A stretch of DNA of 64,000 nt. Source: Salisapilia sapeloensis CBS 127946 (lineage: Eukaryota > Protista > Oomycota). Both the position numbers and the translations under genes were made by a program. The DNA lies in contig JAADVB010000046.1 of assembly GCA_023334545.1 (NCBI GenBank), positions 1 to 64,000 of the forward strand, in the 5' to 3' direction. Positions 6,695 to 28,395 of the stretch are shown here, in pieces; the first letter of the stretch is position 1; each line of letters begins with the position of its first letter. The notes below the pieces were generated by a model, which made no database searches, was not told where the DNA came from, and saw only the letters and a list, made by a program, of their open reading frames with translations.

Positions 6695-8119
6695 ATGATC
6701 GTGCTGCTACATTCACTTTTGAACCTCCTCTGGATTCTATGCAATAGCGCTTTAATCAACTTTTGCCAATTTGCACTATGGTGCCTCGTGCGACCGTTTA
6801 GTCGTGCCTCCTACCGCTACCTCATGGGGTACACTTTTCTTCCAACTAGCTATGACAGAAATTGGTCAGTGGACTAACGTATCTCGTGGTGGTGTATAAC
6901 TATAGGACGACGATCCAAGCGTTGTGGGTCGAAGTCACGAATACTTGCTTTCCTCGCACGAAGCTCCAGATCACGTACAGCTCTATCGATACAAGTACGC
7001 GTCTCGTGCATCTCTAATTGCATTGGTATAGAGGAGACATTCCGTTTGACACGGACCGACCGGCCATCATTCTCTGCAATCACCAAGTCGATGCCGACTG
7101 GTGGTACATTTGGCAAGGTATCTAGCTTACCACCTAGGACGATAAACCCACATACTCATACGAGAGTAGCTGCAAGGGCCAGTAGTGGAGCTGGAAACAT
7201 CAAGATCGTGTTGAAAGAACAGCTCAAGTACGTCCCAATCATCGGATGGGGCATGCGTCTCTTCGAGTTCCTCTTCCTTCGCCGCAGTCTTGCCCACGAC
7301 TCGCACAACATTAAAAGTATTCCGTCTCCTATAGCCAGTTCTAGTCACGTGCTAAAGGGTTCATGATTAGAGTATATGAAAGGCTTGATCGACGACGAAT
7401 TCCCCTTCTGGCTCGTCTTCTTTCCGGAAGGAACGACTATGAATGTTGAGTCTCGCGTCAAGTCCAAGGAATTTGCCAAGAGGTCAAACCGACCAGAGTT
7501 TAATCGTCTCCTCCTCCCACGCTCCACTGGCCTCGACATTGTCCTCGATGGTGTCAAGGACGCAAAGCCAGATATATACGACCTCACCATGGCGTTCCCG
7601 TCGTACTCGGGCGAAGTACCGACGGCAGCTATGGGCTACACTCGCCGAAATGATACAGAGATTCCGTCCATGAAGAGTTTATTAAGTGGAAGAGGGCCAG
7701 AGGTGGTGCACATGTACGGTCAAAAGTATGCGTATGAAGACGTAGCAGAGAATGTGGAGGCGTTTTTGGATGAGAGATGGAAAGAGAAGGAGGAGCGACT
7801 CAACTACTTTATTGACAACCAGAAGTTTCCTCGAGACGAACTCCTCCGCCGGACGATCAGACTGCCATTGTCGTACACGGCGGTTATTCGCCTCTGGATC
7901 GGATTTACCTGTCTAGCGTTTGGATTGCCAGTCGTGGTTATCAGTTTCTTCCCGCTGTACACGGTGTGGGTCGTCTACTGCTTCGTCAGCTCCGTGTATG
8001 ACCGTACGACGAGCTTTTGGTGGCCGTACATTTCGAACCTGTTGCTCCAACCGTCCAAAACTGGTAATTTATTCAAGCTCAAGACGGAGAGGCAGCGGAA
8101 TGTTCCTGTAGATGATTAA
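6695..8119 (+). CDS. Lysophospholipid / lysocardiolipin acyltransferase (AGPAT/LCLAT1 family), multi-exon
   Basis: Motif NHQVDADWWYIW (NHx4D), then KEQLKYVPIIGWGMRLFEFLFLRR, FPEGT and LLLPRSTG, with C-terminal TM helices. Confidence 0.85.
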
Positions 8120-8951
8120 GTCTGCAGAGATGTGAGAGACGGAAGTAATCAAAGCTTCCGTTTCTTGTTGCATCAGGTAGATCAAGGTGCGAATTGAAAC
8201 TTTATTGATGATACGAATCTGGTCTTTGGTAGTTGGCATAGGTCTGTTTCTCATAATGCTGTCTTGTCATTCTTGCAAATGAAAAACAAAGATGTAAAGT
8301 AGAACCGCAAGGTTTCTTTGACGTCGAGTTGGATAAAGCAGTCGCTTTGGTGCGAGTCTCAACGAAGGTTTATATCGTACTAGAGTCTGTGAACACTGTG
8401 TTTTGGGATACTTCGTATGTGGGATGGAGATTTGTTTACTAGAGAATATTCTCTAGATACTTGATGCCTCAACTACTTGCTCTCTTTAATAAACGCATGT
8501 GGAACTGCATCTTCAAAAACAAGAAGCTAACGTTCGAGACATGCTGTGTGATGGCACAACATACAGTCATCTAGTGTCTAGTCAATACGTTTAGCATGAT
8601 ACTACGGTATCCTGGGCTGCATGCAGTTTGTCGACCGTAATGATGATGATTGAAACACGATGGTCATCCACTTCAGTCATCCGTCGCTAAGCGTTCATTT
8701 CTAATCACATATCGACAGCATCAGATGTCATCGACGTTCTGGGCATAAACAATCATATAGACAAGGCAATAGTCGTCATAGCTCCATCGTGGCGATGTAG
8801 ACTCCTGGATGCGAGTGCTCATGAAAGACAAGAAAGATCAAAAGTATCATGCAAAGAAAGCAGCTAAGGCAGAAGAAATCTAACGAGGTTCGAACTAGAG
8901 CATGCATTGTTGCGGCAACGGCCTTATAAAGTAGATTCTTCTTCCTCTTCC

Positions 8952-11900
8952 TCATTCCGTAGAAACTCTTCATGAAGATGTTGAAGATGCTTCCTCAAGG
9001 CTACCACGGCCACTTAAGTATGAATTAAGTCTTGCATGAACCATACTATTCTTATACGTACATTGGACATCCATATCAGCGTATCGAAGGGCAAGCAGTC
9101 GATGTAGCAGACGCTTATCATACCTCATCGGAGGGTAATTCAGTCCATTCGATTCATTCACTCCTGTCATATTAGCAAGACGGTCGTATGTACTAAACGC
9201 TTCTTGTATAATATCTTGCGGTAACCCACACATCGCTGCAGTCTTAATCCCATACTGCCCCGTCGATGGACATGGTCCATCCTCTACTTTATGTCTCAAC
9301 TGAACGTAGTTCTCATGCTCCTCAGATGCCAAATGGTAGCACCGACAGGACGAATAGAGTTCCGCAAGTCGGTTTAGACTAGTGTAGTGGGTTGCAAAGA
9401 GTGTATACGCTCCTTTGGCAATGAGCTGTTCACTCACGGACCAGGCAATAGCGGATCCTTCATCATTCGCCGTCCCTCTTCCCAGCTCATCGATCAGAAC
9501 GAGAGACTGAGGTGTGCATGTATCTAGTATAAAAGCTGTTTCGGACATCTCGACGACAAATGTACTCGCGTTCTCTTCCATATTGTCCGATGTGCCGAAG
9601 CGAGTACAAATGCGATCTCGAATCGGGATGAAAGCTTTCGACGCTGGCACGTAGCTCCCCATCTGTGCTAAGATCGTGATAAGCGCGACGGTACGAAGGT
9701 ACGTAGACTTGCCAGCGCAATTGGCTCCTGTGATGACTAGGACCACATCAGTTATGTAGCTTGTAATGAATAAGTCGCATGAGGTACTGTGGAAGCGAGT
9801 GAGAGGATCGAAGAACTTGGTAACGTTTCGTCAGTACTCTTTCTTTGGGATCATGTCGAATGGAGTGTACCGTATCGTTTGCGACGTAATTCGGTCCGTC
9901 GAGTACTCTTTCAACGAGTGCATGTCGGCCGGCTTGGATGACAAGGTTGCCACGCTTGTTCAGCTTTGGACGGACATCTATTCGTCCCATAAGGATCCGT
10001 CATGCCTCGAGTAAAAGGTATCTGTGTCATGTATACATGGTTGAGTAGGAGGAGCTAGAGCCACGACGTTGACAAAGCTAACAGAAATACACGTCGTCAA
10101 GCACGGAATGACTTGGTTGTGGAAGAGATGTAATGAAACCTGAGAAGCATGTCTAGGAGAGCGATGCTCTCGGCCATGGCGTACATGGTCGCAGCGTATG
10201 GTCGAATGTTATTTAAGAGATCTTGCACTGTATCTGCTGATCGCTTAAAGACAGCGTTCATGGACTCATGGGCACGAGCATTTAGCGACTGGAGCTCCCT
10301 TGTCGTGCACATAATCTCTAGATTTATACATCCAGATCATGTATTCAGTTTATTGTTTTATTGAAAAAGCATATCGATACCTTTGTTCGTATGAACGACT
10401 TCGATGTATCCTGTTGGGATTTGGGCGCTTCCTGCTTGTAGTTTTAAATGATACCCACGGCGTGCCCTGTAGAGAAAGTTCTAGCTTAATATGCACTAGA
10501 TGGAATTTACTTCGTTGTTGATCCGTACGTATAATGAAGTCGGATCGGAAGGTCGCTCTGATCCTCATATCGATGTGCGACTTCATGAATGCGATTGACC
10601 GTATCCAAGTATGTTCTTCGGGCGACGTCGAGCATGCCATCGATACCAGGTCGCACGGCAAAGCTTTCCTGAATACGTTTCTGAGCTGCCGATCGACATA
10701 CTTGTACACTACGTCTCATGAGAATACTATCCGATACGACCAATCTGCTTGATCATTTTACTTTTCACTGAAAACACGGTCGATTTCATTCCGAATGACA
10801 TCAAACGTATCATTTTGAAGGCTTGAAATTATAGTTAACATGTATTAGTCGAGTTTTAAAGAGAATTGAAGGCTAGAGTACCTTTCGATGATAGCATGCA
10901 AGAGAGCAGGGGTCTCTTCTAGCTCACGTCTCGATGACGTGAGCGCAGACGCTAGTTGTGGTAGGCATGCTAGCACATTTTTAAGTGATATCACGCTCGA
11001 AATGGCAGAGCGTGAGATCGCAGCCGTTGTCTGCTTTGGAACGACAACAAGTTGGTGCTATTAAACAAAAGGATCAGCCTGGTAAGAACTTTAGCGAAAA
11101 CGACGTTGTCGATACCAGGATTCGATCAAGTGCTTTGAAGTTTTGAAGCTCCTCAGTTACGTCAAAGAACCACCCAGGATTGTCTAGGAAGACACTAACC
11201 ATTTCTTGACGGTCGTGACTACTCAAGATTATCATGTGGGACCCATCAAGGAGTACGAACGGGAAAGCGTACATGGTTTTAAGATGGCATGTCGGCTGTA
11301 AGATCTACAGACTAGGATGATGATATGAAATACGCTAGTGTTGGATGTGTACAACTTACAGTGGAACGAAGTAGGCGGTATCCCGTTGACGTCTGCGTGG
11401 TGTCCAGGATCCCACAGAGCGACTAAATCAGCTAAAGCTTTCAGTATAAGGCGCTTCAAATGTTTATAAGGCGCAGGGCTGAACCTGTTTGACATTCGAA
11501 TTACGAGCGTTTCGAACGAGTTCGAGTGCTGAAATGGTCGATTGGTCCAAGAGGAGCTTTTGAGACGATGGATTTAGCACCACCTGCATGTACGAAATAA
11601 ATACGGCAGCTAGGTAACAGAAGAGAGTCTAGTTTACCTTGACTGTATTGGAAGCAATGTGCACGCCTTGCGTATATTCAATATATCGCAGCAGCGATGA
11701 GGTTGCAGCCATGGCAACGTAGTTCTAGCATTGAAGGTCATGCAAATACGATCATATCAGACAAGATACACAGCGGAAAATGTACCTGGCTGATGTTGAG
11801 ATCGACATGATTTAGCTTTATACGCCTCAAATCTTCTGTGCCTTGCGTTTGGCTACCCAAAACAAGTTGTAGGATCAAAACAGATCGATAGCTATAATTA

Positions 11901-12416
11901 CACATAGACGAACTTGAAATACTTGCGCTCAAGTGGAACAACACGGCACATCGATGTGCTAAAGTGCTTCATAACTTCTTGATTCAACCCGTGAGCGTTC
12001 CGAGACTTCACGACAAGTATTTCGGATGGCTATTACCATGATAATCACAGTCTTGAGACCACTGCAAGCATAAAGTATATCGATGTAAAAGGTAACCTGG
12101 TATGTTTGCAAAAGCGAAATGGCTTCTGCATAAGAATGGGAGTCAATGATTGTCCATATCAAGAGTTCGTGCGGTGCAGATAAGTCCATGGCACATAATC
12201 CTGAGCAAAGTAGCGGATGAAAAGCTTGCAAGTGCTACGAAAAACAAGATGGAAACCGATCTCTCGTGCCCGTGTTTCAGCTGTAGAGATTACGATAAAT
12301 GGCTCGTTCGGTAGGGCGAATGACTTTGAGGTCCTAGAATATACTGTCGCGGCACTAGTACCCGCATTAGGCATTAACGTCTCCGCGCGGTTTTCCATCT
12401 TCAACTGTTGCTTCAT
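8952..12416 (-). CDS. MSH4: MutS homolog 4 (meiotic crossover factor), highly intron-rich
   Basis: Walker A ITGANCAGKSTYLR, AQMGSYVPA, STFVVEMSETAFIL, LIDELGRGT and FATHY. N-terminal ETRAREIG|LCAMDL is typical of MSH4. The last exon gives ...QLAVVALRKHLQHLHEEFSTE*. The exact 5' end is uncertain. Confidence 0.85.
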
Positions 12417-12927
12417 CAACTATATGTCGTTGTTATTGTGGGATGATTCATAATAAATACATCTATAAATTGAAAAGTTGCTTAGGTTAGTTTTGTAGGT
12501 AGAATTCCTACATCCAAGCTATATCCTATGCTTTTCTTGCCAGATCATAAAGAGAGGACGACAGTAGCAAGACCGATTGGACAACGCATTCATTGCTTCT
12601 ATACAGAAAGAATTGAGACTGCAACTAGAGAAGAACTGCAAATATGAGTGATGTACGTTTATGTTAATGCTGTCGACCTAGATAACACGTAGTGCATTCA
12701 CTCCAATACCTGTAACATGTAGTATTGAGTATATACAAATTTTATACTAGGAGTGTTTAAATGAAGAAACTGCGTATGATTCTAATAAAACTTCGGATAA
12801 ATCTACATTTTTATTTATCTTGGCCAAAGCAGGTTTCAGACTACTTGGAGGCAACGCTTATATTTCGTATTAATCTATGTAAAAGCTTGAGCGTCTCCGT
12901 ACGAGCCATCGTGCGACGACGATGAGA

Positions 12928-13838
12928 CTATTCCTCCACCCCAACCCAGCTTTGGAACGTGAGGATAAACTCCTGGAAAGTGATAGTACCATCGTGATCA
13001 ATGTCCATTTCTTTAAACCGCTCAGTATGAATATCCCTGGTCGTCGCACCGGTACGCTTCCTTTCCAGCGACGACTTTCTTGGTGTATCACCTTCCATTT
13101 TCATGTTTTTGCGTACTTCACTCATTTGAATCGTGCCGCTCGCATCATCGTCGAAGAGCAAATAGGCCGATATCATGATGTCAAAAGCCTTGGTAATTGC
13201 TTTGCCTGGTTTGTCATCAGATCGCGATTTGGAGTCCATGTCTATAGCCGTTATTCTGTCATTATGATCTGGAACTCCTGGAGGCAAGTCCACCGTTTCT
13301 TGTGTATGCGGGACGTAAAGAGATACTTTGTCAAAGTTCTTGATGAGGCCAAGTAGATGGCCAATGGCTAGTGACACAACAAATTCATTGTTGCTTAATG
13401 CTTGATCACGCACCATATCGGACTCGTAGAATATTTCTCTCATGTCTTTTTCTTCCATCATCGCTCCTAAAGATTCCATCGCAGCTTTAAGTCCGTCGTA
13501 ATCCAATCCATTCTTCTCTTGCTACAACATCGATAAGTATTTGTCTCACAGTTGATGACATCAAATTACTCGTGTACACTAGAAAATTGCTGGTAGATGG
13601 AATGGAGAATCTGTAGACCATTTCGAGCGACACCAAACTTCATAGCTATCTGCTCAAAGTGGAAAGACTTGGGTTTGGATGACTTGTCATTGCGTTTAAG
13701 CTCTTGAAGCGTTATGATTAACCGCGCATCAATTCCTGTTGTTGATACTCTCCTCGCGGATGATCTGGCGCTAGCTGCTTCACTCATTACCGGTGGATAC
13801 GCATGCGTCTGTCTGCCCTTGATGAGTCCGCCTCCCAT
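12928..13838 (-). CDS. EF-hand calcium-binding protein (calmodulin-like, similar to plant CML21/22), 2 exons
   Basis: EF loops DDDASGTIQMSEV and DIDHDGTITFQEF; C-terminus FQEFILTFQSWVG; one intron around 13520-13580. Confidence 0.75.
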
Positions 13839-14096
13839 CTTCTGTCGGTTGTCAGAATCCACACTGCAGATCGCTACCCACCTTTATCCTCAGAATAGAG
13901 GATGCCTTGTGACTTTTTGGTATGATGTTTCTCTGGTTTATAAATACATTTCAAAGACCCAGCACCTTTTTTATTATCCATTTCATTTCGTCTCGTCTTA
14001 CTAGTAATCTGGCTTTATTCCGGCCAGGACATGACGCCCGTAGCATCTCTTATGATCGGCGTTAGGTTGCTTTAAGTTGGTTTGGATTTCTATAGT

Positions 14097-16745
14097 TCAT
14101 CTTCGTTTTGTTTTATCTTGCGTGGTTATCGCATTGCTGCAAGGCTCCTCCGCCAGTTTCTCGAGCTCCTCCATCGTCTGTGGGTGTTGACTGAAAATCT
14201 CATCCAGTCGCTTTCGAAAGGCCTTGACAACTTCCCCGAATTCCATGTACCCTGCATCCAATGCGACGAAGAGGGCATCGAGGACGGGGAAAAGGAGACA
14301 AAACATCTTTTCAAAAACATAGTTGTCCGTGTCTTGTAGCAAATCATCCCACGTCTCGTATGTCGATAACGCGGCAGGTTTCTTCGGTGGATCCGTATCA
14401 TTATTCGTGACGTTAGCAGCAACAAGATATGTAAACGTCTTCATGGCGTTTGGAGAGCATCCTTCTGAGTGGGTGCCAGCATCGCCAAGACCCAAGACCT
14501 CGGACATCATGGCCACGACATTAATGCATGCAATGGCGAGTGGGTAGTTCTTCATGTCTCCTTCGCTTACGCCATACCGTCTCCGCTGTAGTATATCGAC
14601 GAACTTTTCCGAGGGGTATTCGAAAAAGTATACGAGGCAGTAGAGACCTAGTAATCCACTGGAGCGAAGGTCGGATGCTGGTCCTCCTCTTTGAAAACCT
14701 AGCTCTAACCACTTGGGGTCATTGTTACCAGTGTATTCGTCCGTCGGGAACGCTTTCGACCATAATCTCTTTAGCATCAATTCCATCGTCTTTTGATCCT
14801 TCGGTGGTCCATTCGTCTCTGGCTTGACATTCGCACGCAAAAGCCGACGTAACCTCCCGACGGAAGTCTGATACGCCTTTCGAATCCGATTGCGTTTGCG
14901 TAGCTCACTTTCGATGATCCCAGGAGATAACGTCGCGGCGTATGAAACAGCTCGGAACCATGATCGGCATTCATCCGGACTGTTGCAGCCTAGAACAATG
15001 CGTCCGAGGACTAGAAGACTTTTGTCTTCTCTACATGAGATCGGGAGACCTGCCAGTGACAGGGCGTACCATGGTCGGGTGTAAACGTCTCCGTCTTCCG
15101 GGTAGAACACGATGCAGTTCTCATGCAAGCAGACGAGCAACCGACCTTTTAATGTTGTGTTAAGCACCAAGTGCTTGAGGTCTGGCGATATGTTCTTCCG
15201 TTCTAAAACGCTCGTCTTGAGTACAAGGCGAGGCGACCGTTCTTCCAAGTCGCATCCGCTAATCTTATTATGCAAAATCTTGGTCATCAACGCCAGCAAG
15301 TCATCTCGCCCTTCATGCGTGTCCAGGAAGAGTTGCCACGGACGTTGTCTGCTTTTAAAGTGGAGCACGATGCCGTGCTCTTCGTTCAAGCCTTTATGAT
15401 GGCTCTTGGAGACAGACAAGAGGTCAGTGAATGGAATCGTCGTGATCGTTTCACCACGACGAGAGTTTGTCAACGTCCGTTCAGCAAAGTTTAACTCTAG
15501 CACTCGAGTCCGTAGGCGTGAACCACTGTTTGCCTTGCGAACTCCGTAGCGTAAGAGGAAGCCTCGGATGCCTCGATCTGCCCAGATGCGCTCCAAGTCA
15601 GATAGACCTTCGAGGGCAGACGCGTTGCCTGCGTTGATGGTAGTTTGGATGGCACGTGACCATTCCGTCAAGTCGTACGCAGACAAGGCTGCGAGAAGGA
15701 TCTCGTGGTTGGAAGCATCACCAGATGTGGCGATACGGAACTCGTGCTCTCGACCGGGTTTTGGTGGCACGACGCATCGAGAGGTAGATGTGAGAACGAT
15801 GGTTTTCACGGGAGAGTTGCCCGTGTCGTCTTTGCTGTAAGTTAGGACCGGGCCTTCCGGTAGAGATTGTAGTGTGAACCATCGACGGTGCCACTTCGGA
15901 ACGACATTTGCCTTCTTGACGAGCCACCCTTGCTTGATAGCAGTCGAGTCGAGCCGTTTACGACTGGAGACACGATATGACGCAAAGGAGGCACGCAATT
16001 TCCGACTATCGATTTTCCCTCGACTATCCGACCTAGAAAGAGACGTATCGACGACGTTGGCACTTAGTTCGTCAAAGAATCGATCTCGACCGAGATCAGC
16101 GTCAAAATTTGATGCTTCATTCGCATCCATGTGGACGGATTCTCGACGAGATGAGGTGCGAATGCAGTCAAATGGAAGTTGATCTGTCAATTCGTCGTGG
16201 AGCTCACCTTCGATACTAACGCCAGAGGACTCCAATGTGCCGGATAATGGAGGCAGTGTGCCGGATGTGAGGAGTGGAGAATCGTCTTCGGAATGCCCAG
16301 AACAGGATAAGTCGGTTAGTTCCGAATCACTCTGTCGATGTGTGTCGAATGAGTTGGCGAGATCAATGTCGAGGAGTGCATGGTCCGTATAGTCGGTTTC
16401 GGCTTCTACGTTGCGATAGCACGAGTCAGCTAGAATACTCGGGTGATACATGTGATGTCGAAGAATTACCTTCAGTGGTCTGTGTATTGTTCGAAGTACA
16501 GGCCATGTCCGTGTCTTTATCTGCCGTGTCGGATAGTGCCATAGAGAGCCGAAGGTCGGAGGGGATGTAGGTGAGCCGCAGCGAATCCATATCCGACGGT
16601 CGTTCTTCATGCTCATCGACTCCATCAATAAGTGACTAAATAGAGCATGCATCCGTTAGTTGAATCCGAGTAGAGTATGAGAAAAATCATGTACATCGAG
16701 CGTATAGAGGTACTCGTCCGAGACTTCATAAGGTGCTTGTGCCAT
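14097..16745 (-). CDS. PH-domain + ELMO/CED-12 domain protein, 3 exons
   Basis: PH domain KQGWLVKK...WHRRWFTL...EWSRAI. ELMO domain LWSKAFP...WLELGFQRGGPASDLRSSGLLGLYCLVYF, YPLAIACINV. 5' exons MAQAPYEVSDEYLYTLD|SLIDG...TTE|ADSCYR are joined by GT-AG introns. Confidence 0.8.
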
Positions 16746-19420: not shown

Positions 19421-20782
19421 ATGCCCATTGATCTCAATCGACTGCGACAGGAGCGAGGTGGGGACCCGGATGCCGTTCGGGAAGACCAGCGCAAGAGGTT
19501 CAAGCCTGCGGATGCCGTTGACAAAGTCCTGGCTTTGGACGAACAGTGGCGACAGAAGCAGGGCGAGGCCGAGACGCTCAGTATGAACATGAACGCTTTG
19601 CAAGCGAAAATCAAGGAATTGTCCAAAGCCAAGGAAGACTTTTCGGCCATTAGTGCCGAAAGAAAGGAATTGGCGCAGAAATTGCCCGGGTTGAAGCAAG
19701 AGGCGGAAGATATTCGTCTTGCTTTGGAAAAAGAGCTTTGTAATCTAGGCAACACGGTCGATGATAGCGTCCCTGTTTCTCAGAATGAAGACGATAATGA
19801 AATCGTACGTCAATGGGGCACTCCCCTCCAATCGGAGAACTTGCAGTACCACCACGACCTCTTACATCGCATCGGTGGGTACGAACCGGAGCGAGGCGTC
19901 AACGTCGCTGGTCACCGCGCCTACTTTTTAACTGGCGCTGGGCTCATGCTGGAGCAAGCCATCATCTCTTACGCGTCTGCTTTCCTGAACGCTCGCGAGT
20001 ATACGCTCGTGAAGCCTCCTTTCTTCATGAACAAGGACATGATGGGCCAGGTGGCGCAGCTAGGAGACTTTGACGAACAGCTCTACAAGGTCACGGGAGA
20101 AGACGAAAAGTACTTGATCGCGACGTCCGAGCAGCCTCTTTGCGGTTACCACAAGGGTGACTGGATCACTGAAAGCTCGCTCCCGCTAAAGTATGGTGGT
20201 GTATCCACGTGCTTCCGGAAGGAGGCCGGATCCCACGGAAAGGATACGTGGGGTATCTTCCGCGTGCACCAGTTCGACAAGGTCGAGCAGTTCTGTCTGA
20301 CGGACCCGGAGTCGTCGAACGAGATGCACGAAGCCATGCTCAAGACGGCGGAGGACTTTTACCAGTCGCTTGAGCTTCCGTACCGAGTCGTGAACATCGT
20401 CTCGGGCGAATTGAACGACGCTGCGTCGAAAAAGTATGACCTCGAGGCGTGGTTCCCTGCTCACAAGGAGTACCGGGAACTCGTGTCGGCGTCCAACTGC
20501 ACGGACTTCCAGGCTCGTGCAATGGAGATCCGATGCGGCGTGAAGAAGCAGAACGAGCGGGAGAAGAGGTATGTCCACATGCTTAATTCGACCTTGTGTG
20601 CGTCGACTCGTACCGTGTGCTGCATCTTGGAGAATTATCAGGATGAGAATGGTGTCGTGGTGCCGCAGGTCCTCGTGCCGTTCTTGGGTGGCAAGACATA
20701 TCTTCCATTCACGCGTGAAGCCAAGGTGAATGTCCAGGCGACCAAGATGCAAAAGGCTGCCAAGAAGAAAGGTAAAAAGTAG
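19421..20782 (+). CDS. SARS: Seryl-tRNA synthetase, cytosolic
   Basis: Intronless 453 aa; N-terminal coiled arm, LIATSEQPL, motif 2 FRKEAGSHGKDTWGIFRVHQFDKVEQF, ELVSASNCTDFQAR, motif 3 HMLNSTLCA. Confidence 0.97.
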   Translation: MPIDLNRLRQERGGDPDAVREDQRKRFKPADAVDKVLALDEQWRQKQGEAETLSMNMNALQAKIKELSKAKEDFSAISAERKELAQKLPGLKQEAEDIRLALEKELCNLGNTVDDSVPVSQNEDDNEIVRQWGTPLQSENLQYHHDLLHRIGGYEPERGVNVAGHRAYFLTGAGLMLEQAIISYASAFLNAREYTLVKPPFFMNKDMMGQVAQLGDFDEQLYKVTGEDEKYLIATSEQPLCGYHKGDWITESSLPLKYGGVSTCFRKEAGSHGKDTWGIFRVHQFDKVEQFCLTDPESSNEMHEAMLKTAEDFYQSLELPYRVVNIVSGELNDAASKKYDLEAWFPAHKEYRELVSASNCTDFQARAMEIRCGVKKQNEREKRYVHMLNSTLCASTRTVCCILENYQDENGVVVPQVLVPFLGGKTYLPFTREAKVNVQATKMQKAAKKKGKK

Positions 20783-20821
20783 ACATGGTAACAAGGTTCT
20801 TTTGTCTTTCCACTCTTGTAT

Positions 20822-21813
20822 CTAAACCACTTGCGGAAGTGCGAGCTTGTGGATAAAGTTGCGTACTTCACAGTAGCGAATGTTTTCGTCCATGACATCG
20901 GCGTCGATGCCCAATTTCCATGCTAGATCATATCGGTTCGGGTCGATATGGAGGTTCTCGAGGTCATCCACGTACCGCAAGCAGTCGTCCTTGGACTGGA
21001 AGAAGCCGAGACTAACGAGTTTATCCGTTCGGCAGTACGTCAGTCGAGCGAGTTCATGCAAATCGTACTCGGGGTGGTACTGAACGGCCCAAAAGTCGCC
21101 CTTCTTATGTCTCAATGCCACTGCCTGGATGTTCGTGAAGGCATTTGAGGCGAGACATAGTGTACCAGGCTGGACGTGCGTGATCTCGTCATTATGAGAG
21201 GTGAAAGCATCAAAGACACTCGGTTTGCCTTCGAACATCGGATGAGCTCGACCTTCTGGAGACAAGATGATCTTTCGAGAGAGGCCCATCTCGCGACCAC
21301 GAGGGTTGGCAGCACAGACACCGCCGGCAGCTGCCACAGCGATTTGTGCGGCCCAGCAAGATCCGAATTGGGGCAGACCGACCTCGAAGATTTCATCCGC
21401 GAGCTTGAGTTGGCGGGCGACGCGAGGGTCATCCGTCTTGTGGACCGTCAAGGAGCAGCCTGTCCATGCCACGGCGTGGTACTGCAAGCATAATGTTAGA
21501 TAGGAGCCGATTGGAGAAGAGTAAAACGATGTACATTGGATAGGTCGGGCATGGAAAAGGACTCGTCGGACGGGTAGATGACGTCGCATTTGACATTGCC
21601 GCCTGGAGTGCACTTTGCAAGCATCTCACGGTATAGTTTGCCTGCAGTGGAGGCACCACCAGCTTCCAGGTCAGCACGACCGTCTTCTGAATACCCGTCC
21701 ACAATGAGCATGGACAGAGGTTTTTGAGTCGTAGAGACCGAGCGAGCGAGAGGGGAGTTTCTGCCATTGGCAAGGCCCTTGCTAAGGAGTTGAAGACCTC
21801 GAGTGGCTATCAT
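20822..21813 (-). CDS. Class I glutamine amidotransferase-like protein with putative mitochondrial transit peptide, 2 exons
   Basis: Exon 1 MIATRGLQLLSKGLANGR...LIVDGYS, intron about 21485-21535, then WTGCSL, nucleophile FGSCWAAQ and QYHPEY (His-x-Glu). Confidence 0.8.
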
Positions 21814-22540
21814 GATTGATGGGCGCTTGGGATGGGAGGAGCGAGCTGGTGAATGATCCGCACGCGATGCCTCTTCGTAAGGAATCTTGAAGGGATGCAA
21901 GCAGTGGTTGAGTGAATGTTGCTGGAAGATGAAGAAGTTCGAATCAGATCTGATTTTGTCTTGGTTTGGGGCGATTGATGTCCTTGTGTTTGTTTCTTTA
22001 CGAGGACAGTGTGTGTGGTGTGTATAAAATACCATACCAAGCATGCCTATTCGCATGCTATTCAAAATGCGGCTACTGTTGCCCTAAATATGCGCCATAA
22101 CGTTTGTGCATATTCTGGCAATGTTTGGCCAAGCAAAGACACAACCCGTCTCAGATTTCGGCGAGATTACCACTGCCTTCTCTACATTTCGAGTAGAATG
22201 TTTACCACGCATACCAATCACAAACGAAACAACTTGAGAGTATGAGTCCGATACCAACACAAGCCTAGGTTAAATGCGGATATGAGTAGAACGCTTGTTC
22301 ATCGTTAATATGAGAAGGGAAATGAAGGCGTTAAGTGTGACAACTTTTACCACATACTTGCTAGGAAGATCTACCACAAAACTGAAATTCTTTCAGTCTA
22401 ATATGCATTACAGGCGTCGTTTCCGATCCTTTGCATTTACGCTTATCTGATATAAAGTTATTTCATTGTAAATAATTTCATAACATAAATAAAAGTTATT
22501 TTTATCATAAATTTCAAAACTGCTAAAGTAACAGCAATCT

Positions 22541-23077
22541 TCAAGTATAAATTTCTGCAAGAGTTCCGGCTAAGAATAAATTATGAAAGCTCGATCCTTC
22601 ATGCCGCCACGAAGGCAGTGGTACTCGAGGCTTGTTGAGAATTAGAGTATCTGAAACAGCATAAACTGAGGTAGCTGGTCGTTTTTGGCAAAACTTCATG
22701 TCGTCTGTCTTGCAATAAATCAGCTTTATTTTATATGAGAGCTGGTCGGAACGTAAGCATGTACTCACATGTCAAAACACTTTTACAATTTCTCTCACGA
22801 TAGGAAGATTCTCTTTGGCATCCCTCGAGCTAGTTCTGTCAGTGAAAAAATATCCTTGATGATAAAAACGGATATGTATTTCTGGCAAAATGCACTGGCA
22901 AAATGCAGCTCGAACTGCCCATGTTGTATGTCTCTTCAATTCACTTTCGTATTGAAGGTAATAAAGGTTGCGTGAATTTAAAATATTGCCGACAACGTCT
23001 TTATACTCAAGCGTACAAGGCATTGTTGGTGAAGCCTTCAAGCACGCGCTTAATAGTGATATGAGTATGAAATACAT
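22541..23077 (-). pseudogene. Small secreted Cys-containing protein gene, apparently frameshifted by a 13-bp tandem duplication
   Basis: Signal-peptide-like MYFILISLLSACLKA; (CTGGCAAAATGCA)x2 at 22882-22907. Removing one copy lets candidate GT-AG introns join downstream exons in frame. Confidence 0.35.
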
Positions 23078-23418
23078 TTGATAAGTTACCGATGAGCATC
23101 ATATGATGCATAAAGACGCATTATAGTTCCAAGAGAGCAGCTAGTCGCTGTAGTGCTAGCTCCTGATTATCCTTTTTCCTAAAAGCATGTAGTTGACAGC
23201 ATAAAAACAAAGAGTGTGTTGTTTGTGTCGTATTGTGCAATGTCTTTAAACCGTTGACTGATTCAAACTCTTCGTCCTCGATCGACTGTCGTCGCTTTTC
23301 TCGATGGCAGCGACATTCAGGGGTTCCGAGTTTTGTCCAGCACAAAGGTATCGTTGGTATCCCTGCAATCCAGTGCAATACTTAGTCAACTCCGCCATAA
23401 AAACATCTTTTAGACCAC

Positions 23419-26334
23419 TTAAGAAGAATCACTCTCAACATCTCCAGCTTCATTTTCCATCATGTTGTCGCTCGAGTTTCTGTACATTAATGTAAACTAA
23501 TATGAATCTCATGAGAGCGAGAACGTCTATAGCCACTTACAAGGTATCAAGCTCTGAATCCCCGGCTTCACCCACTAGATCGTCGTCATTGGAGCTTCTA
23601 TAAGACGATGCTAGCTTTAGCCTACACCACGGAAGAGAACAAGTGTATCCTGATGTACGAAGAATCTGGCTGTGAGCCTTCGACTTCAGCTTCATCATTT
23701 ATAGGGTTGCCTGTCAAGTTCCTGCAAGGCAACACAAACGTTATTTAGCTAAATGTAATAAAGAAACTTGTGTCCACTCACATGTTTATGCCGATAGACC
23801 TTATGTAGGTTCTTGCTGCTGAAGATGTCTTATTAGAACCAATTCCTAGCAAAGAAGACTCTGGAAGAAATATTTTAGCACGCAGTCTGTTGTGCTGGAG
23901 GTACCTGTGTGATACAAAGTGCCCATTAATCGTTCGATATGTACTACAAAGCCTTTTATTCATGACATGAGACGTAGATTCATACACTGTCTTAATGTTC
24001 GGTATATCTGACGTGACATTGGACAGACTGCTGTTCTTCACGAACCTATGTAGACCCGAAACTCCATCGAAGTGCATAGCGCATTAATAGCCATGAGATA
24101 CGCACACTCTCTCTAGATTGGGCCACGACCCATTCCAATTCTCCAATTTCGTGTGTTGCGCGACCCTATCATTCATGTAAATGAGTTGGATCCCATACAT
24201 GTAAATTCAATGACGTACAGCTCCTTTGCCGAGCCGAGGGTATTGCTGTGCGGTGTACCAAGGAATGTGATCTGGTTATGACTCAAATCACTGATCAAAT
24301 TAGTTAATCGCATGATCTCCACAAGAGACATACAGACGCATACACTATTTCGAGGTGTTCGCACTTGTTCCAACGCAAGCTCTTCTCCGTAAGCCTGTTC
24401 CCTGACAGCGTACTGTAGTAAACACTTAAGACCTCAGCATATCTGGCTCTTTTACTATATGTGCTTTACAAAATCTTTAGCTTCATCTCCGAGCAGTCAA
24501 AATCCGTAAGAGTATTGTAGTCAAGATGTCTAGTTCATAAATACTTAGTCACCAATTCAAAAGCGGATTTCGAGTATTCAAATCCTACGCCGTACTGAAG
24601 TTGGGCGTCGTCGCTGTAAAGCTGGCCACACTGTTGTTGTACAGTTTTCTATAAGATGAAAGTGATAAAATGTGCGTCATGAATGGCCATATTCGAAGAC
24701 TTACAAGAACTTGAGGTGTATCCAGTTACCAGTCATATTGATCAATCTGCCGTTGACATTGGATCTAATCAGAGTTCATTAGCACACTCATATTTGACCG
24801 TTGAACTATATTTTCTAAATGAGAATTACAGTTCACTGAGCTTAGGGAATATTTTTGAATCGAATATCTTCATTAAGGTGTTGCTCATGTATCCATCCAA
24901 TTGAAACTTGAGTATGCATAGCATTTGTTGGTAGTCAAAATCGTGTGAGATGAACAATTGCTCTAGCTTTGGAAACATTCCCGATATTTTTTCAATAGGA
25001 TTCACGTTCAGCAAACTGCTTTACACATGAAACATAAGTCATTCAAACGAGACACTTAAATGTCGACATCTTACGCCTTAGTGAGATTCGGCATCGTAGC
25101 TTTCACTTCGGTGATGTCGTTGTTCCTTGAATACCTACATGTAGACAGGCTATGAATTATAGGTCACAAATTGATCATATTCGAACACATACAAGTACTC
25201 GAGGTGGTCCCATTTACCAGTAATAGTCTGTAATCTGCCGTTGTAGTTTGACCTAGTAAATATGTATGAGCAAACTATTATGAGATCTACTAAGCTGCAG
25301 TGCTAGTCCAGGGACATACAGTCTGCGAAGCTTGGGAAATTTATCTCCATCCAGATCCTGAAGCAAGGTATAGCTCATCCTTCTGTTCAGATCAAACTTC
25401 AGTAAGCATATTGTTTGTTAGTAGCCAATATCATATCAGACGCACAGCTCCTCTAACTCAAACGAGTTATCCGATATTTCTTCGATAGGGTTCATCTGCA
25501 GCCAACTTTGTATTTACAAGATGTAAGTCATCGAATCAAAACGATCGACTGTCTAACGCTTACGCTTGAGTAAAATTGTGCATCTTTGCCGTAAATTTGG
25601 AGATGCTATTCCTCCTGGATTGTCTACGTAAATACAAGCGATGAAATATACATCCTACATTGACCATAGCGAAAGACTCACAGGTAGTTGAGGTGGTTCC
25701 ATTCGCCAGTAAAATTCTCCAATCTGTCCATATTGCTTTCCCTGGTCGATTTTTGTTAGTACATTGATATTTAATCGTAGGAGAGGCATGCCGAGAGGAG
25801 CACTTACAGGTGGCGCAGTTTCGGAAACTGGTCTCCATCCAGACTCGTGAATAAGGTGCCCGCATATACCTGTTCATATGATTCCTTTGTAAGCGTAGTA
25901 CTTGCTACTACATAGTGCAGCATTAGACTTACAGCTCTTCTAGTTTAGGAAACACTCCCGATATCTCTTCGATCGGATTTTCAATCAGCCAACTATGTGT
26001 ATATCATGAGCCGATGTCCATTCATTAGTACGGATTTCAAGGTGTTCTACAGAATTTTGACGTGCTGAAACTTGGCTCAATCGAGCTTTGTGATCTTGTT
26101 TTCGCTCAATTTACTACAGTGCCAAAGCTTGAGAGATATCTTTTCATTAGAATTAAACCGATTCACATACATTTCCTTCTTCCTGAATGAAAAGATCATG
26201 TTTGAGAGCTCTTCATCATCAATACGCTTTAATCGATAGTCTGCAACACGAATGTTTGTCTCCTTGTCATATATGCCAGCCAATGCCCACAGCGAGAGAA
26301 TAGCGTATATGACTTCTCGATTGATGTACTTCAT
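23419..26334 (-). pseudogene. Secreted leucine-rich-repeat protein built from ~20 single-LRR phase-2 mini-exons; in-frame TGA in exon 2 and a 1-nt deletion in one exon
   Basis: Signal exon 26334-26171. LRR exons at 26113-26051 (TGA at 26077-26079), 25992-25933, 25869-25808 (62 nt), 25741-25682, 25623-25564, 25505-25446, 25382-25320, 25252-25193, 25134-25075, 25015-24956, 24892-24830, 24764-24705, 24648-24589, 24529-24470, 24412-24344, 24290-24219, 24165-24106, 24045-23986 and 23904-23782, then an acidic/Ser-rich tail. Motifs include xLxxNxI/L (WLIENPIEEI, DLSHNQI, YLQHNRL, NLTGNPI). The 3' exon structure below 23720 is less certain. Confidence 0.75.
24589..25992 (-). repeat. Tandem triplication of a four-exon LRR cassette (period 487-490 bp)
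   Basis: Homologous exon types recur in the same order three times: NPIEEISG(V/M)FPKL, M(S)xTL...FPKL, SNxNGRL...TGxWxHL and N.I/V..F/V.A..(P/H)N(F/L)T.A. Cassette starts are 25992, 25505 and 25015. Confidence 0.85.
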
Positions 26335-26868
26335 ATTCGTCGAATGAACGAAGTGGTTACTGATAAGAGAGTTGTAGAATGAGAAAGATTAAAATTAACT
26401 GGAAGTATTGGTCAGCGCAGAGCAAGACATTTTAGGGGATTCTCCATTCAAGAGGTACAATCCTCAGACTATACCGATGCTTAAGCTACATCAAATTAAT
26501 GAATTTCGCTGGCGCATATGCAGCCATAGACCTGTGCTAAAGCAGGTCACATACGTTCGTGACAACACATGATGCAAGTAGCCTAGCCAAATCTACAGAA
26601 CCAAGGAATCAAATTAAATGATCAAAACCAACTACTAGAATGTTTTTTAAACTGACAGTAACATGGATCCATCGATGTGTGTCCAATCTCTTGACTTCTT
26701 GATGGCTTGGGTTGCCAAGTTACTGTTCTTTGTCATCCATGTACAACTACGCGATGTGCTCGTAGCAGAGCAGACACGCAAAGCACAACCGAGCGACATG
26801 ATCTGTCTTTTTAAGATCTCGACACAAAAACGCACAACAAAAATAATTTTGCCACGAAGCACTCAAGT

Positions 26869-28395
26869 ATGGCTCGATTGGCATTGTCACTCTTCACGAC
26901 AGCCATTGCTGCGCTGTCAATTGGTGCAATAGCTCAAGACATATCTGATCCAGATGCTATTGACCAGCGAGGTGTCCAATTACTTCCAGACGACCTGTAC
27001 GAGTTTTTCCAGTGCCGTGTGTGCACGACACCGGAACTGCATGGCAGCGTAGAAGACTCTGCCTGTGACTACGAAACGGTCGACAAGGCTGTAACGACCC
27101 ACTTTCGTCCTCTCTTGAATGAACTCTCCCAGCTCTCCTTCTTTCGTTACTATAAAGTGAATCTAGGCAAATCATGTCCATTCTGGGATGACGATGACGG
27201 CATGTGTGCTAGCATCGACTGTTCTGTATGTGCATGTGATGACGCCGAGATCCCACCCAAGTGGTATCAACTGGATAAGCAGCGAAAGAAACAAGCAAGG
27301 ACTGCTGAAGTCACATCCAACGAAGACATGCAGGCTTGTGAGCAGCAGACTGGCGAGAGCGAACTTTCTCGCGTAGATCGTGCAAATGCCAAGGCAGGAG
27401 AGAACTTTGCTGCATGGGACGAACAGTCAAGTGCCGACGTATGGGGTAAACAGTTAGAAGATGACGAAGACATGGTATACATCAACTTGCTAGAGAACCC
27501 AGAGCGGTTCACTGGTTACAGTGGTCTCCAGGCGGAGCGTGTGTGGCACGCCATTTACGACGAGAACTGTTTCACACCTCCAAAGGGTCATGAAGCCAAT
27601 TTCACTGGCATGTGTCTCGAAGAACGAGTGTATTATCGTCTTATCAGTGGATTGCAGTCATCTATCAACACCCACATCGCTTTGCAGTATCGCTTTGGCG
27701 ACGTATGGGCGACGAACCCAGCGCTGTATGTCGAGCGTGTAGGTAGCCATCCAGAGAGACTAGAAAATTTGTACTTTGCCTACTTGTTCGTCATGAGGGC
27801 TCTAGGCCGATATCGTGAAGAGCTTCTGCAGTACGATTTCTCCACTGGAAACGATGACGACGATCGTCGGACGGTCGAGATCTTGAGGAAGTTGGTCTTG
27901 GACGATGAGGACCATACTGCGTGTCCGGAAGAACGTCACTCGGTGCTCACTGGTTTCGACGAGCAAGCTCTCTTTCGTGTACAGGAAGGCGAGCTTTCGT
28001 CTGATGAACTGGCGACTGCACAAGCACAGAAGAAGGAGCTAGAGGCCCAATTCCGAGCCAAATTCCAAAACGTCAGTCGGATCATGGACTGCGTCACGTG
28101 TGAAAAGTGCCGGTTGTGGGGTACCATCCAGACACTCGGTCTCGGAACGGCGATTAAGATCCTGCTTGTGGACGATGTCAAGAACCTCGCGCCTTTGCAG
28201 CGTAATGAGCTCATCGCGCTCATTAACGTTGCGAACAACTTGTCGAAAAGTGTCGATGGCGTCCGTCTCCTTCGTCAACAAGAGTTTTCTCATGCGATTA
28301 CACAGTTTACATTGACGACAGGTCTCATCCTTATGATTTGTCTCGTGGGAGCATTGATCCTACGCAAGTTCCGAACAAAAGACAAGACAGAATAA
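26869..28395 (+). CDS. ERO1: ER oxidoreductin 1 (ERO1) with signal peptide and C-terminal TM helix
   Basis: SFFRYYKVNLGKSCPFW, CASIDCSVCAC, YINLLENPERFTGYSG, CLEERVYYRLISGLQSSIN and MDCVTCEKCRLWG (CxxCxxC). Confidence 0.95.
   Translation: MARLALSLFTTAIAALSIGAIAQDISDPDAIDQRGVQLLPDDLYEFFQCRVCTTPELHGSVEDSACDYETVDKAVTTHFRPLLNELSQLSFFRYYKVNLGKSCPFWDDDDGMCASIDCSVCACDDAEIPPKWYQLDKQRKKQARTAEVTSNEDMQACEQQTGESELSRVDRANAKAGENFAAWDEQSSADVWGKQLEDDEDMVYINLLENPERFTGYSGLQAERVWHAIYDENCFTPPKGHEANFTGMCLEERVYYRLISGLQSSINTHIALQYRFGDVWATNPALYVERVGSHPERLENLYFAYLFVMRALGRYREELLQYDFSTGNDDDDRRTVEILRKLVLDDEDHTACPEERHSVLTGFDEQALFRVQEGELSSDELATAQAQKKELEAQFRAKFQNVSRIMDCVTCEKCRLWGTIQTLGLGTAIKILLVDDVKNLAPLQRNELIALINVANNLSKSVDGVRLLRQQEFSHAITQFTLTTGLILMICLVGALILRKFRTKDKTE

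Follow-up and report, generated by a model that had tools for sequence, protein, structure and literature searches.

A leucine-rich repeat gene of phase-2 mini-exons, with a triplicated cassette and two damaged exons, in the oomycete Salisapilia sapeloensis

The window analyzed here, a stretch of 64,000 nt from the oomycete Salisapilia sapeloensis CBS 127946 (GenBank assembly GCA_023334545.1, contig JAADVB010000046.1, positions 1 to 64,000 of the forward strand), contains on its minus strand a leucine-rich repeat (LRR) gene that is divided into many very small exons. The coding sequence spans 26334-23419, with the ATG at 26334 and the TAA at 23421-23419, and these ends coincide with those given by the original prediction. 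Chaining through GT..AG introns resulted in a model with 22 exons and 21 introns in a gene of 2.9 kb, in which exon 1 (E1) measures 164 nt, twelve exons measure exactly 60 nt, two measure 63 nt, and the other seven measure 54, 57, 61, 62, 69, 72, and 123 nt. Intron length is 53-81 nt, except for the first intron, which reaches 178 nt because it encloses a dead LRR exon. The anatomy proposed in the original prediction, one degenerate LRR per short exon following a signal-peptide exon, is confirmed by this model, whose parts are given below.

26171..26334, minus strand: E1, 164 nt, with the ATG, a signal-peptide-like N-terminus, followed by a charged N-terminal segment; phase 2 at its end
26051..26113, minus strand: LRR exon of 63 nt within intron 1, now dead; in-frame TGA (26079-26077) and poor donor (GTAGAA)
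24530..25992, minus strand: triplicated cassette, with copies at 25992-25506, 25505-25016, and 25015-24530
25933..25992, minus strand: E2, 60 nt, LRR type A, cassette 1
25808..25869, minus strand: E3, 62 nt, LRR type B, cassette 1, with splice sites CAG (acceptor) and GTAAGT (donor)
25682..25741, minus strand: E4, 60 nt, LRR type C, cassette 1
25564..25623, minus strand: E5, 60 nt, LRR type D, cassette 1
25446..25505, minus strand: E6, 60 nt, type A, cassette 2
25320..25382, minus strand: E7, 63 nt, type B, cassette 2
25193..25252, minus strand: E8, 60 nt, type C, cassette 2
25075..25134, minus strand: E9, 60 nt, type D, cassette 2
24956..25015, minus strand: E10, 60 nt, type A, cassette 3, with donor GTTCAT
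24830..24883, minus strand: E11, 54 nt, diverged type B, cassette 3, ancestral acceptor lost
24705..24764, minus strand: E12, 60 nt, type C, cassette 3
24589..24648, minus strand: E13, 60 nt, type D, cassette 3
24529-24470, minus strand: E14, 60 nt, single LRR
24412-24344, minus strand: E15, 69 nt, single LRR
24290-24219, minus strand: E16, 72 nt, single LRR
24165-24106, minus strand: E17, 60 nt, single LRR
24045-23986, minus strand: E18, 60 nt, single LRR
23782..23904, minus strand: E19, 123 nt, last full LRR and a 20-residue extension
23721-23659, minus strand: E20, 63 nt, terminal half repeat L-x-G-N-P
23597-23541, minus strand: E21, 57 nt, part of the acidic tail
23479-23419, minus strand: E22, 61 nt, with the TAA, part of the acidic tail

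All 21 introns interrupt a codon after its second base (phase 2), as had been predicted, and all internal exons have lengths divisible by three except E3, whose 62 nt contradict the accompanying claim that any intact exon is neutral with respect to the reading frame. The interrupted codon specifies the hydrophobic fourth position (L4) of the LRR core LxxLxLxxN, and of the 20 junctions that follow E1, 18 have L, I, V, A, F, or M at this place. Each 60-nt exon encodes one 20-residue repeat, with the intron at the same place in the motif and in the same phase throughout, and the gene is therefore a one-repeat-per-exon, phase-2 symmetric LRR array. Most of the donors conform to GTRNGT, and several introns have CTAAC or CTAAT near the 3' end. 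By these signals the introns appear to resemble ordinary introns of the same genome, for example the intron of the CSE1/exportin gene in the same window (54 nt, 36413-36466, minus strand, with GTGCAT as donor and CTAAC as branch site). Furthermore, the motif TCATTC is located 7-12 nt upstream of the ATG (in the 26335-26352 region, minus strand); we take it to be like the oomycete initiator core, and it hints that the promoter of the LRR gene is perhaps still in place. The 3' end (E20-E22, 23419..23721), which encodes an acidic Ser/Asp/Glu-rich tail, is the least certain part of the model, as a stop would be reached at about 23623 if the E20 donor, GTACAT, is unused.

A four-exon cassette, A-B-C-D, is present in three tandem copies (E2-E5, E6-E9, and E10-E13) with a period of 488-489 nt. 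The repeat was found by a repeat search and MAFFT alignment but was missed by Tandem Repeats Finder. Identities within an exon type are 63-73% for type A (E2, E6, and E10), 65-72% for type C (E4, E8, and E12), and 55-62% for type D (E5, E9, and E13), while for type B E3 and E7 are 67% identical and E11 has diverged. The remaining exon pairs are at the shuffled background (46 +/- 6%), and E14-E18 (23986..24529) are not alignable to the cassettes at the DNA level. Because the order A-B-C-D is strict in three out of three copies, the array reflects segmental triplication rather than permutation of single exons, and because introns are only 54-59% and exons 61-64% identical between the copies, the triplication is old. 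The unit of one repeat per exon in turn predates the cassette, since all four exon types share the position and the phase of the intron. Growth by exon duplication, as originally proposed, thus took the form of a tandem triplication of a cassette, whereas there is no sign within the gene of the swapping of single exons that had also been suggested: the exon order is strictly collinear, and similarity among the non-cassette exons does not rise above background. In the third cassette, the intron between the A and B exons has a weak donor (GTTCAT) and has lost the ancestral acceptor, and since its 72 nt are open and in frame, E10, this intron, and E11 may together serve as a single exon of 186 nt.

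The closeness of these exon and intron identities could also be taken to mean that there is no gene at all, only a 489-nt tandem repeat with open frames that arose by chance, a reading for which the failure of Tandem Repeats Finder to report anything has likewise been listed. This reading is refuted by four lines of evidence, namely the run of 21 consecutive GT..AG introns of one phase with a spliced frame open over 1446 nt, the excess divergence at third codon positions, the significant match of the LRR profile to the Protein Data Bank (PDB), and conservation of exons only in the paralogous contigs described below. Comparison of the three cassette copies gives identities of 0.68, 0.68, and 0.53 for codon positions 1, 2, and 3, respectively, and a ratio of nonsynonymous to synonymous substitution (dN/dS) of 0.27-0.62 for the concatenated cassette exons. 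As third positions diverge most and dN/dS is in this range, these exons evolved as coding sequence, and they have been under protein-level constraint after the duplication.

The peptides of 16 exons align to the consensus x-L-x-x-N-x-(L/I)-x-x-(I/F/V)-x-G-x-(W/F/M)-P-x-L-x-x of a 20-residue repeat, and the profile built from them matches LRR proteins in the PDB with E values of 4e-5 to 5e-4; the best matches are repebodies built from internalin B and lamprey VLR, followed by VLRs and fibromodulin. Judged by this conserved segment, the predicted product belongs to the LRR superfamily. The positions predicted to lie on the concave face differ in 76% of pairwise comparisons, in which the pairs are not independent, versus 50% at other non-core positions, and such variability of the predicted concave face is what LRR binding surfaces usually show. 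The exon-peptide profile had no match outside the gene in a six-frame translation of the 64-kb window, a Pfam search with four unspliced open reading frames (ORFs) gave no LRR match, and word-based protein searches with the 85-aa and 62-aa ORFs gave no candidate. An Atlas search with the 62-aa ORF returned only generic LRR/FNIP-like clusters below a reliable score. No match to a degenerate type-A exon pattern turned up in a metagenome scan, and none of 149 pattern matches in a search for related loci was confirmed. For exon 1, an exhaustive search of 1.84 billion representatives gave no homologue apart from one spurious match (P0001), which was rejected as due to chance; it is a tandem-repeat ORF beside SRCR-domain genes, probably in an animal genome. 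That ORF (GCA_964260595.1, contig CAXVOG010000774.1, region 7456-15121) is a gene call of 533 residues with about 10 tandem copies of a 64-residue unit, which begins with a signal-peptide-like segment.

Two exons of the array are damaged. The dead exon (26113-26051) encodes an LRR-like peptide interrupted by the TGA, and E3, which in the alignment lacks one base relative to its sister E7, therefore shifts the frame when it is included. Inclusion of either exon leads the frame into stops, while omission of both leaves an open frame of 1446 nt (481 codons) to the TAA. The splice sites of E3 are nevertheless good (acceptor GAACAG and consensus donor GTAAGT). Rescue of E3 by other splice sites was considered and rejected, because the sole in-frame acceptor, at 25900, leaves an intron of 32 nt and none of the other donors is suitable. 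A 43-kb Logan contig of the DNA run X1, a run that may be the sample from which the window was assembled, matches 23300-26500 without a single difference, E3 included, and therefore the lesions cannot be put down to this assembly alone.

The main rival to a disabled gene is a gene that still functions by omitting the two bad exons, in which the dead exon and E3 are treated as intron (178 and 191 nt) and a single, invariant mRNA specifies a secreted protein of 481 residues with 16 repeats. In favor of this possibility, the frame without both exons is uninterrupted from the ATG to the TAA, all 19 downstream exons are intact, the donor of the dead exon is already degenerate, and the cassette exons show purifying selection. 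However, E3 keeps its acceptor and its donor, and its inclusion would be expected if the short introns are recognized singly; in addition, no RNA run was listed for the gene. We therefore regard a functional gene of this kind as unlikely, though a serious contender. The original prediction had named an ordinary decaying LRR pseudogene as the outcome that would speak against a recognition system, and a copy with two lesions fits the observations at least as well as the recognition system does.

The recognition system proposed originally was one diversified by splicing, in which the cell skips or chooses among frame-neutral LRR exons, so that one gene yields a large set of binding surfaces. The uniform phase 2 of the introns, the divisibility by three of nearly every exon, and the frame-neutral ancestral length of both exons with lesions speak for such a system, as do the alternative transcripts of LRR exons reported for Ectocarpus ROCO genes (PMC11378527). 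In contrast, the introns of 53-81 nt are very short, and very short introns favor recognition of each intron singly, so that exon skipping is rare. Furthermore, the symmetry of the exons is fully explained by the duplication history, and the search for runs gave no transcript evidence for this gene. Splice diversification is thus quite improbable here. When runs were searched for the LRR gene, no RNA run was listed, and only three sets of DNA contigs appeared among runs of any kind. About one quarter of the sampled words lie within exons, and a well-expressed transcript in an indexed run should therefore pass the threshold; this weakly suggests that expression of the gene is low or none.

The spliced product has a hydrophobic stretch at approximately residues 8-22 (best 19-residue Kyte-Doolittle mean, 1.2), followed by A-L-A, a possible cleavage site, which makes the signal-peptide-like nature originally attributed to exon 1 plausible and, with it, secretion of the predicted product. 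The hydropathy scan found no hydrophobic segment after residue 25 and no transmembrane segment. The product is too short to accommodate a kinase or GTPase domain, nor do the flanking ORFs (ERO1, GATase, and small ORFs without a name) supply one. Hydropathy, product length, and flanking ORFs thus agree with the earlier observation that these domains are lacking, and a receptor with a transmembrane, kinase, or GTPase module is excluded at this locus. The N-glycosylation sequons that had been pointed out are present (12 N-x-S/T), but their excess over composition is only marginal, with 7.5 +/- 2.4 in shuffled sequences and 12 reached in 100 of 2000 shuffles. After the last LRR there are only about 60 residues, acidic in character, and the last 75 residues contain 18 D/E and 2 K/R. 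On reading the sequence after the signal peptide, no RXLR-type motif was found.

Besides the contig identical to this locus, nine further matching pieces came from other X1 contigs, nearly all of them with less than 90% identity. Among the matches listed, six other contigs match single exons with approximately 80-88% identity over 49-101 nt, the similarity ends at exon ends, and the regions covered are E1 with its 5' flank, the dead exon, E2, E8, E9, and E10; the dead-exon region (26048-26096) is matched at approximately 84%. By these matches, the exons of the paralogues are conserved and the introns are not. The paralogues split after the triplication, because their identity of 80-88% exceeds the approximately 62% between the cassette copies. 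In one paralogous contig, 313 nt, the spacing of one cassette, separate an E2-like from an E9-like exon, versus 801 nt here, which suggests a change in cassette number by unequal recombination. This is the only hint of rearrangement among the paralogous matches. That the family as a whole works as a combinatorial system, with regulated skipping of 60-nt exons, including bypass of E3, and a secreted repertoire for recognition or evasion, we consider highly improbable.

The LRR gene lies in a syntenic block of the window, 19421-28395, with the order ELMO/PH - JAB - SerRS - (GATase) - ERO1, which is interrupted as follows.

21814..26868, no strand assigned: AT-rich lineage-specific insertion between the GATase and ERO1 genes, GC content 0.39-0.41 versus 0.51-0.53 in the flanks

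The order ELMO-JAB-SerRS-(GATase)-ERO1 is kept in Albugo candida and in a second oomycete contig (SRR15309574), where the gap before ERO1 is 81 nt and approximately 440 nt, respectively, and holds no LRR exon, versus 5 kb in the window. Because these gaps are short and without an LRR exon in both oomycetes, the LRR gene is a lineage-specific arrival at this site. The repeat search found no transposon-like terminal repeats around the 5-kb insertion, which contains the LRR gene and a second, broken small ORF. The latter corresponds to a pair of small ORFs that has a hydrophobic N-terminus and is located immediately downstream of the LRR gene (22541-23077, minus strand), within which the ORF 22772-23077 holds a perfect 13-bp tandem duplication (two copies, 22882-22907); the pair may represent a second lineage-specific, broken gene, possibly for a secreted product. 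The neighboring genes, such as SerRS, ERO1, and ALG9, are single long ORFs, and therefore 21 introns in 2.9 kb are exceptional locally. The SerRS of the window is 75-78% identical to that of Phytophthora, Pythium, and Albugo and 66-68% identical to that of Saprolegniales. In Albugo candida there is no GATase gene between SerRS and ERO1, and a gene with a match to the Cas12f1-like_TNB domain (PF07282) directly follows ERO1.

Starting from the observed anatomy, LRR identity, coding constraint after the triplication, lesions, insertion, and paralogous exons, we consider it reasonably probable that this gene is a recently disabled copy from a lineage-specific, probably secreted LRR family and that its symmetric mini-exons are a footprint of duplication. 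The gene would have grown by tandem duplication of a unit of exon plus intron, and because of this mode of growth each repeat would retain a separate 60-nt exon, with the phase-2 intron at a constant position in the motif; the four-exon cassette would have been triplicated later. The frame-neutral layout would then be a footprint of this history and not a working generator of diversity. The protein encoded by the intact gene would have been soluble and secreted, with about 17 repeats of 20 residues in a short, internalin/SDS22-like shape followed by the acidic tail, and could have formed a curved extracellular scaffold for binding, with the variable residues on the concave sheet. This copy would have been inserted into a conserved housekeeping block and disabled recently, so that the remaining 19 downstream exons have not yet decayed. 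Since there are a dead exon and a frame-shifting E3 with good splice sites, the main transcript, if there is any, should end early. Secretion, the binding function, and the loss of function are the parts of this proposal that go beyond what was observed, and several points weigh against it. The signal peptide was recognized from hydropathy and an A-x-A site, not by a predictor. Cysteines number only two in the mature protein, and it lacks the Cys-rich caps that are typical of most extracellular LRR domains in plants and animals. In addition, 19 consecutive exons (E4-E22) are open and have usable splice sites, which also fits a functional gene that omits E3. Finally, that no RNA run was listed does not mean that none exists.

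Arrays of one LRR per exon with phase-2 introns are known from other lineages. In the LRR-ROCO genes of the brown algae Ectocarpus and Saccharina, each LRR is encoded by a 72-nt phase-2 exon (24 residues), and scrambled exon paralogy, alternative LRR-exon transcripts, and LRR relics in introns have been described (PMC3341825, PMC11378527). The literature thus supports the parallel with Ectocarpus drawn in the original prediction. Both are stramenopile genes with one LRR per exon, a fixed exon length divisible by three, phase-2 introns, and local tandem duplications, and the dead exon at 26113-26051 can be compared with the non-coding LRR relics in brown-algal introns. However, the oomycete exons have 60 nt (20 residues) and not the 72 nt of the brown-algal type I exon, GxxPxxLxxxxxLxxLxLxxNxLx, which ends after N-x-L-x, whereas here the intron lies inside the core, between LxxL and xLxxN, five residues before the Asn. 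Furthermore, the product lacks the ROC-COR GTPase domain of brown-algal LRR-ROCO proteins but has a signal-peptide-like N-terminus, and scrambled exon paralogy and alternative transcripts have been documented for the brown-algal genes, not for this one. Because exon length and intron position differ, the two layouts arose separately, and the proposed oomycete equivalent is an analogue rather than a relative by descent.

In Tetrahymena, LRR genes contain tens of thousands of exons of exactly 90 bp, and over 96% of these follow phase-2 introns; arrays of equal-length exons, a junction residue common to two exons, and species-specific expansion by duplication are features shared with the gene described here (PMC6564038). 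In contrast to this ciliate, with its 90-bp exons and thousands of genes per genome, the exons here have 60 nt and the visible family is modest. In the vertebrate LH/FSH/TSH receptors, the ectodomain likewise has a separate exon for each LRR and only phase-2 introns, a layout that has long been read as growth from one prototype exon (cited in PMC11378527), but these are seven-transmembrane proteins with repeats of about 24 residues and Cys-rich caps, whereas the product here has no membrane anchor and two Cys. Taken together, the gene is an independent instance of a layout that brown algae, ciliates, and vertebrates also have, and does not belong to the ROCO family. At the level of the repeat, its shape L-x-x-L-x-L-x-x-N-x-I-x-x-I with a short variable part is like that of the short LRRs (20-22 residues) of internalin and SDS22, but the repeat of 20 residues ends in G-x-(F/W)-P-x and the similarity is limited to the repeat consensus. 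Secreted LRR-only proteins are also known from filamentous plant pathogens, for example ZtLRR of Zymoseptoria tritici (bioRxiv 10.1101/2025.08.22.671746), and the combination of a signal peptide with a bare LRR domain would make it a possible analogue in function, one that binds host surface receptors or mimics them; ZtLRR is fungal, and a host-directed role of the oomycete protein would be pure conjecture. Our full-text literature searches found no paper on such a layout in oomycetes, although one may still exist.

The locus alone reveals no new mechanism, but it displays three stages in the life of such an array, namely a triplicated cassette, an intron that has possibly turned into exon, and two decaying exons. 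Oomycete genes are usually intron-poor. A 2.9-kb gene with 21 introns stands out among them, and gene callers and ORF tracks will miss genes of this kind; as a consequence, catalogues of secretomes and effectors of such genomes probably lack this family. If a splice-based repertoire were true after all, it would be unusual in a group otherwise known for intron-poor genes. The gene adds an independent case, with a new exon length of 60 nt and a new intron position, to those that link LRR arrays with phase-2 symmetric exons, and it bears on how repeat proteins grow by exon duplication.

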